Shown piece after piece: positions 22,167 to 42,539 of a DNA stretch of 64,000 bases (position 1 is the stretch's first letter; the number at the start of each line of letters is the position of its first letter). A program made the translations under genes and the position numbers. The stretch lies in contig CM119378.1 in the NCBI GenBank assembly GCA_051294905.1, positions 15,438,001 through 15,502,000 of the forward strand, given 5' to 3'. Source of the DNA: Botryllus schlosseri (taxonomy: Eukaryota). The notes beneath the pieces were generated by a model that did not search any database, was not told where the DNA came from, and saw only the letters and a program-made list of their open reading frames with translations.

Positions 22167-23072
22167 ATACTTCTCCGTAAGTATGTCGCTCCGCTTCATT
22201 GCCCGAGAGAAATGTAGGCGGGGTACATAATATTAAAACATGACGTCATCAATAGTAGCATTCTTGCACGGGGTTTCTTGCGGTCAGGAGTTTGTTTTTC
22301 CGCTTTCGTTGGGCTAGATACGCTGATGGCGTAACTGAAAGTGAAAGCTTCTTCCTCTGTAGCTCGTATCTTCCGGGCTTCTTGCACATTTTCTCAAGTA
22401 GTGGAGGAATGAGAGGTTGGCCTGGAGTTGCAGGGATGTTACCAACAACAGCATGGAAAACGAACGAGTGCCGGTACCTTGTAAGAAACGTAACGAAATA
22501 TAACATCAAATGGATAAGCATTGAGATTAAAGAGGCATGGGTCGGAGGGTGAAATTGACATGTCAGTTATTGGTTTGTTAATTTCAAGCTAAGGCTATAG
22601 TATACATTCAGTAGAATTGATATGGTTTGGTACGATTGAGCGAACAATAAGGACAATCACATGCAGAATAAGGTCAGTCTCTATACGTGCACAGTTAGGA
22701 CAGTTTTTCCATAATAAAAAACCATATCCCCAAAAATTCGTATAGCTTAAGTATGTATATTTATGAGCATTTTATTTACCAAAGAGTAGCCTACGCAAAA
22801 TAATGGTTGGATAAGACTTATTATGATTCAAAATATCTGATGATGTATATTCCGACCATATGATGTCAGCATTATTTTATGTCATGTAAAACTATTGTTA
22901 TATAGTTTATATTATTGAATTTACCGTAACCAACTCGGCTTACTCATTGTGAAATGATGATAATGAAAAGTTTGTCAATTTATGCAGGTCTATAATTGTC
23001 TGTCTGGGTGGTATATGGTGTAGTAATTGCTTCCTATATGTAAGTTGTTGGATATAAACGATCCCATTCAAC

Positions 23073-26000
23073 ATGACGACAATCGAACTTACTCCGGACT
23101 TAGTGTTTGAACGTGCCGATGGTGTAGCGTCCCCCCTTCCCAAGTATTGGGGGCCATCCTCCACCCTAAGACCGAAATCAAAACCCAAACCTCACAGTCG
23201 CGGTTACCACTCCACTGGGTCCGCTACATTACCGACAAGAGGTCGAAAGGGGGGTGCAGCCGGCTCGGAATATGGAATTATGATCAGTGTCAAAGATATA
23301 AAGGGTCATCCGTTTGTGGTCTTGGAAGACAAAGACAAACAAAAGCATATGGTACAGGCCCCCGAAAATGAGGGTAATTCGTCCGTTCTGTCGTCGGAAG
23401 GACGTAACGGATTCTCTCCCGATGTTGACGATAATACGAGCCCGTCAGACCTATATTATAACTCGCCGACACGACGCGAGTACAAAAGACAGCCCGATCA
23501 GTCTCCAGTACCTCGGTTACGTTCGCGAGAGAGCATTAGAAGATCTGCGGAAAGACAAAACATTCCACCGTCTCACGCCAAAGTAAGATCAAAGAGCGTA
23601 CCACCAGGCCAAGCTGGGCAAGGAAGAAGACAGCAAAGAGCTAGAAGCGTCTCGCCACCAGCTCGCGAGCGATCAATCAAACCCGTCGATAGCGAAAATA
23701 TCAAACCCGTACGTGGCTTGATCGGATTTTTCGAAGCCACGTCACCTACACAGGAAACCAAGCCATTTCCAACGAACAAAAACACCGTGACACGTCCGAC
23801 CCCAAGTTCGAAAATTCGCGATGTCGCAAATCGCGTGGTGTCGCCGACCAGCACAGTGTCTATTTCGAGTATCAATTCGTCGGTGGATGTATCTCAAAAT
23901 ATGCGGAGATCCGGTCTTACCGTGACGACAGTCGATGATCCGCCAAACGCATCAAATAAACCTGAAGGTCGCTATTTCGCGTTGACCTCTCCAGGCGTGA
24001 CTAAATCGAACGGTGGTACATTCACCATGCCGAGATTAACAAAAATCGAAAAACCGGTAGATTACACCCCAAAAAAGGCCAATTTGAACAGACTACCGAG
24101 ATCATCGAGCACAGAGCCTTACGAACCAAAGTCTCGTGACCCGAGACCCTTTACCAAGTCTCCTGGTCCACAACCGTACCACAAGCCTCAAGAAGCTAAA
24201 CCGTCGAGCAGTAGCTCAACGGAAGGAGCAGATTTGAATAGCCCAAAATTCTGGGAAGATAGAAAGAAGCCTTCATACTTGCCGTCTTACCAACGAAACC
24301 TTCAAGCCGGCGATTCGTTTCCTAGAAAGAAGCAAGAAGATCAACACTCGAATGTGCCAAAGACACCAGTAAAAGAAGCATCCCCGGCCAGAAAGTATAG
24401 TTCCCCACCCAAAAAAACTGACTCAAAGGAAACTCCGGTGAAAAAAACAACAGAAGAATCTCCGAATTCGACACACGTCAGCAAAGCAAAGTTTATCGGG
24501 CCGAGCCAAATGCTGCTGAACAAGACAAGACGTAGAAAAAGCGGGCGTACCGCTCGAAAGCTGTCGACCGCGACTAGCGATAGCGAATACAGTGGATCTG
24601 AATTTTCCGACGCCGAGTCTTTGAAGCTCGGGGAAGATGCGTATCACGATAAAGCCGATACAGACGCCGCAGATAACGAAGTATTATCGATATCGCAATC
24701 AGCACCGCTGTCCACAACATCAGAGCCAAACGATGAACTGATCAAGCAGCTCGGTCATCGACGTACCCCGAGTATCAAGTTTGAAAAAATAGCAAGCGAG
24801 GACGTGACTAAAAGAGCACCAAATGACGAAGTGGACTCTTCGGTTTTGAACGAGCAGAAGACGCGTGCCGATAGTTTGGAAAAAGATCTGAAAAATGCTA
24901 ACGATAAAATAGAGAAACTCAACGAGAAGATATCGGCGCTAGAAAGCAAGCTGCGTTCTGCGAATTGCGACATCGACATAAAGCAAGCCGAAAACGGGTT
25001 GCTGAAACACGAGGTCAGCCGGTTGAAGAAGAATTTGGAAGAGGCTCTGTCATCGGACGAAGATGAAAAACAGTCGGTCTTGAGTCTTCAAAGAAGCCTG
25101 AGCACTGCGAAACGTGACAAGTCCTCTCTGGAAGAGACGATCACGCTGTTGGAGTCTCAGAAATCGACGCTGAAATCGCAGCTGCAAGACGCGAGACGCG
25201 AACGCGAAGATAACGAATCTCAAATGCGTTCGTTGAGACATAGCATCGAGAAGTACCAGTCTAAGATCAACGAACACGAGAGGGACACGGAAAACGCTCG
25301 GAAAGAGCTTTCGCGCGCCAAACGTCAGTCTGAAGCTCAAGTTCGTGACCTCGAGAGTCAACTCGAGAAGGTGGAGGATAAATCCCGCGAGTTGCAGGTC
25401 GAAAATTCAGCGCTCGAAAAGCAATTGTACGAGTTGAAGCATCAGCAAATGGCGAACGCCGACGAAGACGAGCATATTAACGAGACTGTCCGGCAGTTGG
25501 AGCAGTCGAAATTGAAAGCTCTTCAAGATCTGGAGGCGGCGTATAAAGAAATTGACGAAAAATCGAGATCGTTGCGCGAGGCGGAACGCAAGAATAATAA
25601 CTTGCAGGAAGAATTGCGTCGTATGGATGTTGAGATGGAAGCGGAATTGAAAGAGAGAGAGGCAACTTTGCTCGAGTCTCGTCAGTCGACGCAAAAACTG
25701 AAGGAAATGAAGGCCCAGGAGCAAGTGGCCAATCGCGAGATCGAAATGCTGAAAAAGGAATTGGACAACGTCAAGTCCAAAGGCATGGCGGCAAACTCGG
25801 AAATGACAGGCTTGCAGGATTTGATGGACGAGAAAGACTCCAAAATCGAATCGTTGGGAAGGAAAAACAAGGCCCTGCAGAAGGATGTTGAAGATTTGAA
25901 ATCGTCTGCAGGTGAGCAAGATTTGTTATCTGCGGAAAATATGAAATTGTCGGGCGTCGTAGTCGATTTGAAGAAACAGCTGAGAGAAACGGAAATCGAA

Positions 26001-27302
26001 TTGATGGCGACAAAGGATGCACTTGATGACGCGCAGAACGAATTGAAGAAAATCTCTGACAAAGCGGAACAGCATCGTCAAAAGGCGTCCGAGCTTGACC
26101 GGGACACGTATGAACTCCGAGATGACTATGAGAAAACAAAATCCGCGTTGGAACAAAAAGAGACGGCTTTAAACGCGGCTAGGGCCGCGATCGGTAAAAT
26201 CGAAAATCAAATGAAGGACTACGAAGAGTCGCATTCGCAATCGGAAAAAGAGAAACATCTTATCGAAGCCGACCGGGACGAGACACGAAAAGAAATGGAA
26301 GCTCTCCAAAAGCGGGTTGAATCGCAAAGCAAGCAAATTGATGACGCTAACAAAACGGTGAAGGAACTACGTGCCAAACTTGCAGACGATGTCAAATCTG
26401 GCCTTGATGGCATTGAACGCGTAAGCGAGCTGAAAAAAGAAGTGCAAAGGTTGCAGTCGATGGCCGATGAGAAATCGCAGCAAATTTTCGCGGCCGAGGA
26501 AACGATATATCGACAAAAAGAGGTTATCGAGGACATGAACGCGATACACGAAAACGCAAAGAAAGCCGCTCTGGAAGAGATGGAGAAATTCATGACGGGT
26601 ACCGAAAGTCAGTTTGGCGAGTTGCGGACGGAGCTGGAAAAGAAAAATGGTGTTATCGCCAGATTGGAGGCGGAAAAGAGAGATCTAGAGGAGGAACTGG
26701 ATGAGTTAGAGAGACGGAATCCGCAGTACGAGGACGATCATGAGAAAGAGGAGGAGCTTGTGAATCTCAGTCAGAAATTGCGCGATGAGGAAGAGGAGAA
26801 GCGGATCCTTCTCTCCGGAATGAAAACGGCGCAAGACAAGTTAGGAAACGCCCTGAACGAGATCGAAATCGAACGTAGCCGCGCGCAGCTGCTTCTCGAC
26901 GAGAAGCGAAAGAGCGAGGACGATGCAGAGTACCTCCGTGACAGGGTACGCGACCTGGAAGAACGTCTGGACCAGGAGGCGGTCGAACTGAACAACATCA
27001 AGGCCCATCACGTGAAAACGGAGAGGAAACTTCGTGATGTTCTGAAGCAGGCGCAGGATGAAAATGACAGGGCGGTTCACGAGAGGGAGCTGCTGGCGGT
27101 ACGCGCCGAAGCGTCTGAAAGGCGCGCCGATGAGGCTGAGGCGGCAGTAGCGCGGGCTGAAGACGGCAGGGTGGACTTGGAGAATGAACTGCGGAGGCAG
27201 ACTGAAGCTAATTATAAGTTGCAGCAGACTCTGGCCGCACTAGGCATCGGTCATTCGCCTGGCGGCTCTGACTCGCCAGACGGCTTGCTGACGTCGGTGT
27301 AA
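23073..27302 (+). CDS. CGN/CGNL1: Cingulin/paracingulin-family protein, 1409 aa, single coding exon
   Basis: Uninterrupted 4230-nt ORF with an in-frame stop just upstream (23055). Residues 67-84 YGIMISVKDIKGHPFVVL match the ZIM motif as remembered (CGN YGVAVRVQGIAGQPFVVL; CGNL1 YGVSIRVQGIDGHPYIVL). A ~590-aa S/P/R/K-rich head is followed by ~800 aa of myosin-tail-like heptads and a short tail; there is no motor domain. Confidence 0.8.
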   Translation: MTTIELTPDLVFERADGVASPLPKYWGPSSTLRPKSKPKPHSRGYHSTGSATLPTRGRKGGAAGSEYGIMISVKDIKGHPFVVLEDKDKQKHMVQAPENEGNSSVLSSEGRNGFSPDVDDNTSPSDLYYNSPTRREYKRQPDQSPVPRLRSRESIRRSAERQNIPPSHAKVRSKSVPPGQAGQGRRQQRARSVSPPARERSIKPVDSENIKPVRGLIGFFEATSPTQETKPFPTNKNTVTRPTPSSKIRDVANRVVSPTSTVSISSINSSVDVSQNMRRSGLTVTTVDDPPNASNKPEGRYFALTSPGVTKSNGGTFTMPRLTKIEKPVDYTPKKANLNRLPRSSSTEPYEPKSRDPRPFTKSPGPQPYHKPQEAKPSSSSSTEGADLNSPKFWEDRKKPSYLPSYQRNLQAGDSFPRKKQEDQHSNVPKTPVKEASPARKYSSPPKKTDSKETPVKKTTEESPNSTHVSKAKFIGPSQMLLNKTRRRKSGRTARKLSTATSDSEYSGSEFSDAESLKLGEDAYHDKADTDAADNEVLSISQSAPLSTTSEPNDELIKQLGHRRTPSIKFEKIASEDVTKRAPNDEVDSSVLNEQKTRADSLEKDLKNANDKIEKLNEKISALESKLRSANCDIDIKQAENGLLKHEVSRLKKNLEEALSSDEDEKQSVLSLQRSLSTAKRDKSSLEETITLLESQKSTLKSQLQDARREREDNESQMRSLRHSIEKYQSKINEHERDTENARKELSRAKRQSEAQVRDLESQLEKVEDKSRELQVENSALEKQLYELKHQQMANADEDEHINETVRQLEQSKLKALQDLEAAYKEIDEKSRSLREAERKNNNLQEELRRMDVEMEAELKEREATLLESRQSTQKLKEMKAQEQVANREIEMLKKELDNVKSKGMAANSEMTGLQDLMDEKDSKIESLGRKNKALQKDVEDLKSSAGEQDLLSAENMKLSGVVVDLKKQLRETEIELMATKDALDDAQNELKKISDKAEQHRQKASELDRDTYELRDDYEKTKSALEQKETALNAARAAIGKIENQMKDYEESHSQSEKEKHLIEADRDETRKEMEALQKRVESQSKQIDDANKTVKELRAKLADDVKSGLDGIERVSELKKEVQRLQSMADEKSQQIFAAEETIYRQKEVIEDMNAIHENAKKAALEEMEKFMTGTESQFGELRTELEKKNGVIARLEAEKRDLEEELDELERRNPQYEDDHEKEEELVNLSQKLRDEEEEKRILLSGMKTAQDKLGNALNEIEIERSRAQLLLDEKRKSEDDAEYLRDRVRDLEERLDQEAVELNNIKAHHVKTERKLRDVLKQAQDENDRAVHERELLAVRAEASERRADEAEAAVARAEDGRVDLENELRRQTEANYKLQQTLAALGIGHSPGGSDSPDGLLTSV

Positions 27303-30300
27303 TACACTGGTTTCAAACATTTTTATTTATGGTCGCGATCCATTTTAAGAATATAAAATTTTCCGCAACACACCTCTAGATTTGATAATCTGATAGCTAA
27401 GAAAAACGATCAAGACCTTTGTCCAGACATAGACCCAGCGATTTTAATTCGCCAATTGACTTTTTCTTGTCTGGTATTTGAATCTTTCAGTGTTGAAGTT
27501 TTTTCGTTTTAAATCCAGTCTACAGTAGTGTTACTGCCCAAACGGTAATTGCCCGCCGTAACCACTAATCATACGCAGACGTGTTGATGAATTGTCGCGA
27601 GAGCTTGTCTGCAATTACGAACGCTTGTATCGGTGATGTAGTATCTGCTTGCGGTGCTTGTATTATCTCGTATTCTATTGCAATCTTATAAACGGTGCTT
27701 GATTTTGACGTGGTGTAATCGTTTGTTGCATACTCGACCATTGTAATAATCATTGTGATTTGCGGGTGATATAAAAGCAATTTAGTTCCAGATCCATTTC
27801 TACATGTATGTCGTATCTTACCTTTATGCAGTATATTTATCCTCTCGGTAGACTAACTTGGCAATTATTTACACTAAGTCGTGTTTGAATGTGTTCTAGA
27901 ATAGGTTGGGCCGTGGTTTCGAGTGCTGTTTGTGAAATGCGCTTGTGTACATAAAAGGAAAGCGATTACCTGTATCTGTCATAGTGAAGACTTAATAACT
28001 GGTAGGTGTGTCATGTGTACTTGAATAGGTCTCTAATAAATCCTGAGGCTCTGGCGGCCCGGTGAATTGAAATCATATTTAATTGTGATATGGAAAGCAC
28101 TTCTTTTGTTTATATCATATTTAACATCAATCAGACTCAACGAAGCATAACATCCAAGGTTTTATGATTCGTGATCCCCTCGCTTTAATTTTTGTGAAAG
28201 AAACCATGAAATAGCTTGGTGGCTTTTATGAAGGCTTTCATATCATTTGACCGTCTTTTATCAAGTATTATATTACTCATTTGCACACACGAGTTTGGGT
28301 CCTGTCTTATGTGTCTGGGTTGTATTATCTTTGCACCATTTGTGGTATTCTGAAGTTTTACTTTTTAATCACGAGAGTTATCTGAAGCATGCTGGGTATC
28401 TTTATTTTCACATGGTTTTTAGCCTGGTCGGGGGACTTTGATAGTCCCTGCTAATGATCACATTGAAGCATTGACCTGTTTGTGTGGGCATTACAAAATT
28501 AAGATGAATGATTCCAATTGGAATCTTGTCTCGTGCTTATCATGCCTGAATCTGTACAGTGTTTCAATTATCATCAGCCGCTGTCACTTATGGTCTGAAG
28601 CGGTTGACAGCTGTGGAACGGCGTACGCCGACCGATGTGACACTCTGAGAATTTGTCAGGGATTCAAATTCTTGACACTGCCAATAATATCATTTCTTAT
28701 CGCTTGAGAGAATGGTACTTTATAAAATATCATGAATGTATTTTTTAATTTCGGTGCTTCTTTTTTCTTGATGATTGTATTTGCTAATTATTCCTTGCGC
28801 CTCACCTGACAGTTAGCAAAGCATCTGTAACAACACTGCTAATGGCATATTTTTATATATCACAAATTCCATTTTACTAACAATTTTCGTATAAATAAAA
28901 TCACAGATGCCATTACCGAGATTTAGTCTTCGTTCGTAATGCGATACATTCTTGGCCTACAAGTTTTGGAGAAGGAAAAGCTGATGAAATGGACACCTCG
29001 ATACAAGAGTATGCGAGCACACGGAGAAAATTGGACTGCTCACTGCTATTGGCTTGCCCGTACGTTAATTCTTGGCTCTGTTCCATACAGTATAGCCTAC
29101 ATTAAACCTGTATTATATGGCTAATAATGTTTGTTGTTTACTGATGTGTAAGTCCGTTGATACATAGTTCTTATGACTGCAACTTTAATGCTTTTGACTC
29201 CCCCAAACCATTTATGAATACCGTTCTCCTGCTTGCTTGACACGATTCTCTTCAATGCGCTACATATTTCCCCTAATCTCCAGGCATTCTCAAATTTACA
29301 GGTACGGAAATGTGTGGATGCGGAATGCCGTGAGGTAAAGTGATGTAAGGCCTAGGTATGTGGTCGGAATCATGATGTATCATGACAAGAATGCAAGGCA
29401 CGCACTCATTCATCGTGTTTTGGTAGCTTTTCCGCATCAGGGATTTTGCTGGTGGGTATGTATTATTTTGGTCCCACGGATGAAAATCTGTCTACTGTGC
29501 ATATGATGAATTGCAATTTGTTTATCGAAATTGTGAACTTCATTCCTCGTTTGTTCAATGTTTATATCTCTGCAAAATCTGTTGCTACAACTCCTGCAAT
29601 ATTACTTCTATCAGTTATCATGTCAGTATTTTCCTTTGTAAAACTGTTGAAATCACTCTAAGTTGGGGGGTAAGTCTACGTTGTGCTTTGTATTAACTAA
29701 CAGGTAAATGCATCAAGTGGATAATACAACATGAAACTCGTAGCGTGGAAAAAATTACAACATAATATTACACCATAATCGGGTTTCATTTTTATTGAAA
29801 ACCTAAAAACATTTATCATTTGTCTTCCTCACTTTGACACTTTTGTTTTTACTATTTCTCAATCGTTGATGTAGTTTCTTTGGTAGTTTTTAATATCAAT
29901 TCCCAGAATCCCCATTCCGGGTCCCGTCATGCTATTTTAATTGACACTTGTGATTTTACCTCAAAACACCCACCCTTGAAATAGGAAGTTGATCATTGTG
30001 AATGACAAAGCTCCAAAATTAATTCACGATTTGCTGAAGATGACCTGATATAGTATGGTAACTAATTGCATAGCACACGTAAAGTAACAAAATAATCAAA
30101 TGGCTATATGTCCGTGCCCATTAATTTTTGACCCCGAATTTTGAAGGAGACAAATAATGTATGACGGTCGAACAAATATATATATTTAATGCACGACAGT
30201 CATCGTAACAGGCGATATAAATCCGACTTATACAACCTTTGAACCAACAATGGTTGATGATGACAATTTAATTTGCTGTGTTTGAGCAGTTTATGAACCA

Positions 30301-41003: not shown

Positions 41004-42539
41004 ATGATGCGTTGGTTATATCAAGGCCTGTTGAGTTCTTCGCGTCGTGTTATTTCCCCGTATCGTCGAGGATTTTCGGTTACTGCATCACACCAAGCCA
41101 GATTTGTTGATGACGCGACGGAAGCCGTTCGTGATATCAAAGATGGGTCGAAGCTATTGGTTGGTGGATTCGGATTATGTGGGATACCCGAGAATTTGAT
41201 AGGAGGTTTGCTGAATACTAAAGTGAAGGATTTGACAGTGGTGAGCAACAATGCTGGAGTGGATAACTTCGGACTTGGATTGCTTCTGCAAACGAAACAA
41301 ATCAAAAGAATGATATCATCGTATGTTGGCGAGAACGCAGAATTCGAAAGACAGTTTCTTTCTGGCGAGTTAGAAGTAGAACTAACTCCTCAAGGTACTC
41401 TTGCCGAGCGGATCCGTGCTGGAGGAGCTGGGATACCTGCGTTTTTCACTCCTACTGGTTACGGCACACTGATCCACAAAGGCGGTGCGCCGATCAAATA
41501 CGGAAGCGACGGATCTATCGTAGAAGCTAGCGCGGCTAAAGAAAGCCGAGAATTCAACGGTCATAATTATGTGATGGAAGCAGGAATCACGGGAGACTAC
41601 GCGCTGATAAAAGCATGGAAAGCTGATACTGCCGGTAATTTGATTTTCAGAAAAACGGCACGTAATTTCAACCCGCCGATGTGTAAAGCCGCCAATATCA
41701 CCATCGCAGAAGTGGAAGAGATAGTAGAGGCGGGAACAATCCCTCCGGAAGACGTACAAGTGCCCGGAGTTTTCGTACACCGCGTGATCAAGGCAGAAAA
41801 ATACGAGAAACGAATCGAAAGACTAACCACCCGCATCGTCGACTCAAAATCAAGCGACAAGCCGTTGAGTGAATCGGCGAAACTGCGGCAGAGAATAATA
41901 CGCCGTGCCGCACTTGAATTCAAGGACGGCATGTATGCAAACCTTGGCATTGGTATGCCGATGTTAGCGAGTAACTACATTCCCGAAGGCATAACAATAA
42001 AGTTACAAAGTGAGAATGGCGTATTGGGACTTGGTCCATTTCCATTGATGGGGGAACAAGACCCAGACCTTATCAATGCCGGAAAGGAAACGGTAACTGT
42101 ACTCCCGGGCTCTTCATATTTTTCTAGCGACGAAAGTTTTGCGATGATTCGCGGAGGTCACATTGATGTCACCATCCTCGGAGCTATGCAGGTTTCGAAA
42201 TTTGGGGATTTAGCCAATTGGATGATCCCTGGTAAAATGGTTAAAGGCATGGGCGGCGCTATGGACTTGGTGGGCAGCCCGAAAACTAAAGTTGTGGTCA
42301 CGATGGAACACAATGCTAAAAATGGTTCCGCCAAAATACTGGACGAATGCTCTCTTCCGCTAACAGGGGTACGTTGTGTTGATACCATCATCACAGAGAA
42401 ATGTGTTTTCGATGTTGATAAAGAAGTCGGTCTTAAACTGGTAGAAATCGCAGATTCCTTATCAGTCAAAGACATTGAAGAATGTACTGCCTGTTCTTTT
42501 GTGGTCAGCGATGATTTAAAACCCATGGGTCAAGTTTAA
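41004..42539 (+). CDS. OXCT1: Mitochondrial succinyl-CoA:3-ketoacid CoA transferase (SCOT), 511 aa, intronless
   Basis: R/S/L-rich transit peptide; [60 protein letters not shown], catalytic [24 protein letters not shown]. Both CoA-transferase domains are in one ORF. Confidence 0.97.

Follow-up and report, generated by a model that had tools for sequence, protein, structure and literature searches.

A candidate cingulin/paracingulin family member in the tunicate Botryllus schlosseri

We analyzed a stretch of 64,000 nucleotides from Botryllus schlosseri (GenBank assembly GCA_051294905.1, contig CM119378.1, positions 15,438,001 to 15,502,000 of the forward strand), which we refer to as the window. 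At 23073..27302 on the + strand, a single-exon open reading frame (ORF) encodes a protein of 1,409 amino acids (aa), followed by a stop codon; a preliminary description, made from the sequence alone, had already pointed to this ORF. (All features described below are on the + strand and are numbered from the first letter of the window.) Taken as a whole, the best explanation is that this gene is functional and belongs, as a tunicate member, to the cingulin/paracingulin family, and that its product acts as a junctional adaptor; we assign a probability of about 0.7 to this reading. It is a new and hitherto unlabelled tunicate member of a known family. We observed the gene structure, transcription, selection, protein architecture, motif homology, and family-level similarity of the rod; every binding event and the cellular location are what we infer.

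To our knowledge, cingulin and paracingulin are usually described as vertebrate-only. Full-text searches of the literature covering tunicates, ascidians, and amphioxus found no description of a tunicate cingulin, and two reviews call tight junctions vertebrate-specific (PMC6928779, PMC7809799).

The putative ZO-1-interaction motif and relatives in other tunicates

In vertebrate cingulin, the first 70 residues, which hold the motif for interaction with ZO-1 (ZIM), bind the ZU5 domain of ZO-1 with a Kd of ~40 nM. Through this binding, cingulin is brought to tight junctions and ZO-1 stays extended (PMC9010756). The Botryllus protein also has a ZIM-like core near its N-terminus. The core, YGIMISVKDIKGHPFVVL, occupies aa 67–84 (nucleotides 23271..23324), exactly where the preliminary description had placed it, and is the sole match in a six-frame translation of the window. 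It is followed by a conserved extension, ED..K.HMV.AP (23325..23363), in which H92, M93, V94, A96, and P97 are invariant. AlphaFold2 predicts strands at aa 81–85 and 91–95, which would form a short hairpin between the end of the core and the conserved HMV. The predicted local distance difference test (pLDDT) score of the motif block is 75–84.

From five tunicate sequences, we built a profile of 61 columns that runs from RGYHS to HMV.AP, and we compared it with 1.84 billion representative proteins using HMMER (E threshold of 1e-3). In all, 26 proteins passed, among them full-length proteins of tunicates, fragments that correspond to exons of tunicate genes, a Logan protein of 960 aa (P0024), and two groups of metagenome-derived N-termini (FGVKISIQALKGHPFVILEG... 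and YGVRVQIKALQGHPFVILEDS...). The sole named non-tunicate match is a shark protein, XP_078062370.1, “cingulin-like, partial [Mustelus asterias]” (E = 2.3e-4, at aa 33–69 of the shark protein). The ZIM-like match of the preliminary description is therefore significant in a profile search, and this search of the whole library led us to reject a chance motif. In a single pairwise comparison with BLASTP, 17 of 35 residues are identical between aa 54–88 of the window protein and aa 35–69 of the shark protein (E = 2e-7). Aligning a six-sequence profile of the tunicate head to the shark protein with hhalign gave a probability of 92% (E = 5e-7), and this alignment reaches the ..PAP that both have in common.

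All of the motif-bearing sequences, from the tunicate homologues to the two metagenome groups and the shark protein, match the pattern [YF]G[VI]x[IV]x[IV]xx[ILV]xGxP[FY][VI][VI]L within their first 123 residues. The pattern was built after the fact; its chance expectation is ~1e-9 per protein of this size and ~0.2 over the whole library of 2.4e11 residues. Some other approaches to the motif gave little. A word-index search with the motif region returned only the two closest relatives, as too few 5-mers are shared; a look-alike search of the ESM Atlas with aa 1–130 gave weak and unrelated matches (scores of at most 0.61); and no model in Pfam covers the motif. Homologues carry a precomputed PF24161 label, which we rejected as irrelevant: it reflects a faint match to the coiled coil of CCDC39.

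When we searched with the head (aa 1–500) and the C-terminal part (aa 1100–1409) of the protein, the best matches were two Logan proteins (P0001 and P0002), Ciona intestinalis LOC104265795, and Clavelina lepadiformis LOC143452557. By these matches the gene is tunicate-like, and we rejected the possibility that the DNA is from a vertebrate because the head search gave tunicate matches. P0001 is 67% identical to the window protein over its full length. The Ciona protein (2,312 aa) and the Clavelina protein (2,321–2,448 aa) are far longer than the 1,409 aa of the window protein and are just 27–33% identical to it, but both, like the Logan proteins, are colinear with it from the first conserved residues (TIELTPELVFER) to the final ...L[LF]TSV, and all of the conserved blocks are common to the Ciona and Clavelina proteins. 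Across these highly divergent tunicates, the motif is the best-conserved part of the head, and the rest of the head is fast-evolving. In RefSeq, the Ciona and Clavelina genes are named “uncharacterized protein”, and older models of Ciona fragments are named “flocculation protein FLO11-like”.

Protein architecture and a rod that is myosin-like at the family level

The protein has a disordered head, a long coiled-coil rod, and a short tail, which is the layout of cingulin and paracingulin. The distribution of prolines, the heptads, and AlphaFold2 all agree with the preliminary description on these three parts. The head (aa 1–588) is proline-rich, with 63 of the protein's 66 prolines within aa 1–583; it lacks a heptad signal, and apart from the hairpin at the motif, AlphaFold2 models it with low confidence. 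The rod (aa 589–1388, or 800 aa; 24837..27236) is modelled as a near-continuous helix with six short breaks and contains only one proline. In the rod, 50–75% of the a/d heptad positions are hydrophobic, versus 3–28% elsewhere. The tail (aa 1389–1409, or 21 aa; 27237..27299) is predicted to be non-helical, includes the serine-rich HSPGGSDSPDG, and ends with SLLTSV (the last three residues are at 27291..27299). For comparison, mammalian cingulin has a long dimeric rod with a myosin-2-like C-terminal part and a short tail, and is about 1,200–1,400 aa in total. The head of paracingulin (CGNL1/JACOP) is about 600 aa, which is closer in size to the 588-aa head of the window protein. Myosin-2 heavy chains begin with a motor and IQ domains, but the N-terminal 588 aa here are disordered instead, and a Pfam scan of the window protein found neither a myosin head/motor nor an IQ domain.

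The preliminary description also called the rod myosin-like, and at the level of the family this stands. We built a profile of the last ~340 residues from six family members and compared it with proteins of solved structure. It matched residues 1621–1925 of Myosin-10 (non-muscle myosin-2B) with E = 8.1e-11 and Myosin-9 (non-muscle myosin-2A) with E = 2.7e-7; the match to smooth-muscle myosin was weaker (E = 0.017). Over the last ~270 residues of their rods, the tunicate family members can be aligned with residues ~1620–1925 of the MYH10 and MYH9 rods, and the corresponding segment of the window protein is at 26934..27233. Furthermore, the Ciona and Clavelina proteins match the Pfam model Myosin_tail_1 over their last 220 residues (45 and 67 bits, versus a cut-off of 38.1). 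The cingulin rod is myosin-like, which agrees with the family-profile match. We saw no sign, at the level of profiles, that the rod belongs to a foreign coiled-coil family.

Within the rod, conservation is highest in a block of 66 residues around AE[ED]TI[YF].QK[ED]VIE[ED] (aa 1123–1188; 26439..26636), which includes AEETIYRQKEVIED. All full-length members retain this block, among them the Ciona and Clavelina proteins, P0024, and the gene on a Tara Oceans contig (L001), and it may be the mark of some partner. The C-terminus is also conserved: all of the full-length tunicate proteins end with S-L-[LF]-T-S-[VI], and the Tara contig gene ends with M-L-T-E-V. As the SLLTSV end fits the class-I PDZ-ligand pattern, its conservation suggests a second anchor.

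Four blocks in the head besides the motif are conserved. The N-terminal block MTTIELTPDLVFER (23073..23114) is apparent in alignments with P0001 and the Ciona and Clavelina proteins. Just upstream of the motif is RGYHSxGS (23199..23222), with six of eight positions invariant in five tunicate sequences. Further along are VD..N..PV.GLIGFFE (23685..23735), which is kept in all of the full-length tunicate proteins, and GRYFALTSP (23967..23993), with G299, R300, Y301, F302, T305, and S306 invariant in the six-sequence head alignment. Weaker look-alikes of GRYFALTSP are found in metagenome proteins (VFALTTS and TFFAIGS, in P0015 and P0022). We considered whether the LIGFFE block corresponds to ID....SVDSLISKFD in the shark protein, but the likeness is not significant (32 of 300 shuffles score as high as the real sequence or higher) and profile methods missed it.

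A transcribed, intron-free gene

The ATG of the ORF is preceded by an in-frame stop five codons upstream. In three sequencing runs that are classed as RNA, contigs tile from 22986 to at least 28170, colinear with the genome and without joints. The 5' untranslated region (UTR) therefore includes at least 22986..23072 and the 3' UTR at least 27303..28170, although it may reach ~28910. There are AATAAA signals near 28035 and at 28894–28899. The region directly upstream of the transcript (22350–22946) has zero coverage in all three RNA runs, which argues against carry-over of DNA. Among 28 listed variants between the RNA-run contigs and the coding sequence of the window, 20 are synonymous and 8 are non-synonymous (22% synonymous would be expected at random; p = 3e-8), and so we rejected a pseudogene. 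Contigs of two of the RNA runs also have one extra codon, an in-frame insertion of GAA, at 24221 in the disordered head. Given the joint-free contigs, the silent region upstream, and the excess of synonymous variants, we conclude that the gene is expressed as an unspliced transcript and that purifying selection acts on it.

The Ciona orthologue has a very different structure. It spans 45 kb (AP043569.1, ~11.99–12.04 Mb) and has at least 35 exons, and an intron splits its motif after GIKG; the exon fragments that we found in other tunicate assemblies are interrupted there as well. The rod of the Ciona protein is built from a series of exons of 57–59 aa each (171–177 nt; ~24000–29600 and 41150–42820 of L007, which is from AP043569.1), which suggests that the longer Ciona rod grew through tandem duplication of exons. 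Compared with this orthologue, the window gene has lost every intron. In the relative with 67% identity, the coding sequence is likewise uninterrupted, as a single ORF within a contig of 9.3 kb (L003). This contig has only the coding sequence and a downstream element of 74 nt in common with the window; the element is ~1.5 kb past the stop codon in the window and 1.9 kb past it in L003. Because both are shared, the relative's copy is genomic and syntenic, and the intron-free state, which is common to the two loci, is old. Replacement of the original gene by a processed copy would account for this, and so would wholesale loss of the introns.

An intron-free copy of a multi-exon gene is what a processed retrogene looks like, so we asked how probable it is that we are looking at a dead retrocopy, or at a generic coiled-coil protein with a chance motif. 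Besides the contrast between one exon here and at least 35 in Ciona, the Pfam matches of the window protein would fit such a view, as they are to generic coiled-coil models and are all below threshold. Yet the ORF is intact, transcribed, and under purifying selection; the same intron-free gene is present at the syntenic locus of a relative whose protein is 67% identical; and the motif has the very low chance expectation per protein given above (~1e-9). We consider this explanation very improbable. There is no run of A in the 3' stretch that we inspected past the stop codon, and L003 has no run of A or T of 10 or more. However, since the intron-free state is shared with the 67%-identical relative, any marks of a retrocopy would have eroded long ago.

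The 74-nt element (28836..28908) is 88% identical to L003:6503-6576, whereas the coding sequences are just 68% identical. It is present in a single copy in the window, includes the AATAAA at 28894–28899, has a weak predicted fold (z = -2.1), and does not match any tRNA or Rfam family. One possibility is that the mRNA of this gene ends in it and that this 3' end is conserved; another is that it is a small regulatory element. In one RNA run (X24), only four reads join 23350 to 28852. This apparent junction has 6 nt of microhomology (GCATAT) and is followed by adapter-like letters. Most likely, it is a template-switch chimera within one long transcript, which hints that the transcript extends to 28852 or further.

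Two other observations concern the locus. In RNA run X11, one contig has 30 unmatched letters before 23060, which is 13 nt upstream of the start codon. These letters have no match elsewhere in the window, and the break lacks an AG acceptor; they could be from an allele, a chimera, or a leader. Also, at 41004–42539 (+ strand) there is a 511-aa single-exon ORF that matches CoA_trans (PF01144) in two stretches with E = 2e-127, and which we take to resemble succinyl-CoA:3-ketoacid CoA transferase. Genes for proteins of this type are multi-exon in vertebrates; this neighbor is a second intron-free gene here.

Family placement and a possible link from junctions to myosin

Our comparison with vertebrates is to one shark fragment (XP_078062370.1), which ends at the start of the rod. 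Like the tunicate proteins, the shark fragment has a ZIM at the equivalent N-terminal position, a disordered head that is rich in Ser, Pro, and Arg, and the beginning of a rod. Paracingulin has the same plan of motif, head, rod, and tail. The ZIM region of paracingulin is likewise a ligand of the ZO-1 ZU5 domain (PMC9010756). The tunicate proteins also carry a rod block (AEDTIYRQKEVIE) and the S-L-L/F-T-S-V C-terminus, and both lie beyond the span of the shark fragment. Overall, these comparisons support the cingulin/paracingulin-type interpretation of the preliminary description, with the motif as the only part that is detectably in common with the vertebrate head and with ZO-1 as the putative partner.

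Several results weigh against this placement. Beyond the ~35-residue motif, no part of the tunicate head aligns significantly with the shark cingulin head, and the TIELTPELVFER, RGYHSLGS, LIGFFE, and GRYFALTS blocks are undetected in it. Only one vertebrate representative passed E = 1e-3 in the motif search, and the searches with the head and the C-terminal part at the same threshold found tunicates only and zero vertebrate proteins. The claim of a myosin-like rod does not carry over to the window protein taken alone, which has no significant match to Myosin_tail_1 or to solved myosin rods; because of this, its link to myosin rods runs through the Ciona and Clavelina relatives. The placement draws on the motif, the layout, and the family-level profile of the rod, and is best viewed as probable.

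Could the tunicate proteins be a separate coiled-coil family with a ZU5-binding motif, instead of orthologues of CGN and CGNL1? The motif would then have arisen by exon shuffling or convergence, and the rod would derive independently from a myosin-2 tail. It is the motif alone that aligns with vertebrate cingulin, and TIELTPELVFER, LIGFFE, AEDTIYRQKEVIE, and the TSV end are all undetected in the shark head fragment, the sole vertebrate sequence compared. Shuffling is conceivable given that the motif of the Ciona gene is split by an intron and is encoded in small exons. Nevertheless, the motif is at the same N-terminal position in both groups, and what follows it is ordered as in cingulin: first a disordered head, then a long rod whose end is myosin-like, and finally a short tail. 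Convergence on 18 patterned residues along with the common V/S-PAP extension would be unlikely, and each of Ciona and Clavelina has a single locus among the matches, as expected before the vertebrate duplications. For these reasons, we view a separate family as unlikely.

That there is one gene each in Ciona and Clavelina among the matches, together with the phylogeny of tunicates, is why we describe the cingulin-type gene as putatively pre-duplication. In the motif-profile search, no named protein from amphioxus, echinoderms, or protostomes passed E = 1e-3, which is a harsh threshold for a short motif, so the absence of the motif outside of tunicates and vertebrates is suggestive only. In marine metagenome assemblies (from ENA and Tara Oceans; L001 and L002), there are two further groups of motif-bearing sequences (P0008–P0012, P0015–P0017, P0022, and P0023). 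On the L001 contig (Tara and ENA), a complete multi-exon gene encodes the motif and a rod, together with a weaker FALT-like stretch, the conserved rod block, and the ...MLTEV end. The obvious guess for its host is a pelagic tunicate. It is also a possibility that the metagenome groups, one of which is from Tara Oceans, come from animals other than tunicates, which would imply a deeper origin. P0024 bears the motif at aa 18–35 and the blocks LIGYFE and GRYFVLTS; it also has the conserved rod block, and it terminates with ...SLLTSI. It is from a divergent lineage or else is a second paralogue of some tunicate.

If the gene is a true cingulin/paracingulin family member, then the protein would dimerize via its 800-residue coiled-coil rod. 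Its motif (aa 67–97) would most likely bind the ZU5 domain at the C-terminus of ZO-1 in this animal, perhaps through strand addition, and this would recruit the protein to apical (tight) junctions. The myosin-rod-like C-terminal part of the rod would most likely pack on the rods of non-muscle myosin-2 and so tie the junction plaque to actomyosin, while the S-L-L-T-S-V end might be a second anchor, on a PDZ scaffold. We infer that the mechanism is the same as for vertebrate cingulin because the motif is the best-conserved part of a fast-evolving head. In vertebrates, the rod-tail region of cingulin tethers myosin-2B (PMC10202830) and binds its residues 1757–2006 (bioRxiv 10.64898/2026.04.02.716052; PMC10202830), and at the rod-tail hinge, phosphorylation of Ser switches the binding of myosin-2B (bioRxiv 10.64898/2026.04.02.716052). 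The fly ZO-1 protein, Pyd, has a ZU5 domain (PMC6605796), so this receptor domain is older than chordates. As for the junctions, tight junctions are present in tunicates, and one survey reports none in amphioxus (PMC8618301).

The protein could also be a true relative of cingulin whose motif serves another partner or another place, such as the cortex, the base of cilia, or the midbody, in which case there would be no ZO-1-cingulin-myosin module in tunicates. Partner and location are assigned here indirectly, AlphaFold2 gives mostly low confidence for the free N-terminus, and the reviews that we searched describe cingulin only at the junctions of vertebrates (PMC11128289). But no part of the head is better conserved than the motif, even between highly divergent tunicates, which points to a conserved partner; the motif-holding region binds the ZU5 domain of ZO-1 in vertebrates (PMC9010756); and flies have the ZU5 domain in ZO-1 (PMC6605796). 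We judge another partner or place to be improbable, more so than a separate family.

A more specific version of the cingulin-type reading is that a protein with a motif, a rod, and a PDZ ligand is the ancestral form of the cingulin family, and that it originated along with tight junctions in the ancestor that tunicates and vertebrates share. Such a protein would be a two-ended linker, with its motif on the ZU5 domain of ZO-1 and its T-x-V end on a PDZ scaffold, and the PDZ end would have been lost in vertebrates. We put this forward tentatively, as an idea that may well turn out to be wrong.

As a cingulin/paracingulin-type protein, the Botryllus gene and its relatives imply that the linker from junctions to myosin probably predates vertebrates. 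Motif-bearing relatives across tunicates put the likely link between ZO-1, cingulin, and myosin before the genome duplications of vertebrates, and they make this link testable in Ciona, which has a transparent embryo and easy transgenesis, and in which the dynamics of junctional ZO-1 and myosin have already been studied. The tunicate sequences also provide natural variants for dissecting the key residues of the motif, and they flag the rod block and the PDZ-ligand-like end, which may mark unknown partners. Finally, they correct the naming in databases of the Ciona and Clavelina genes (“uncharacterized”) and of the older models of Ciona fragments (“FLO11-like”).

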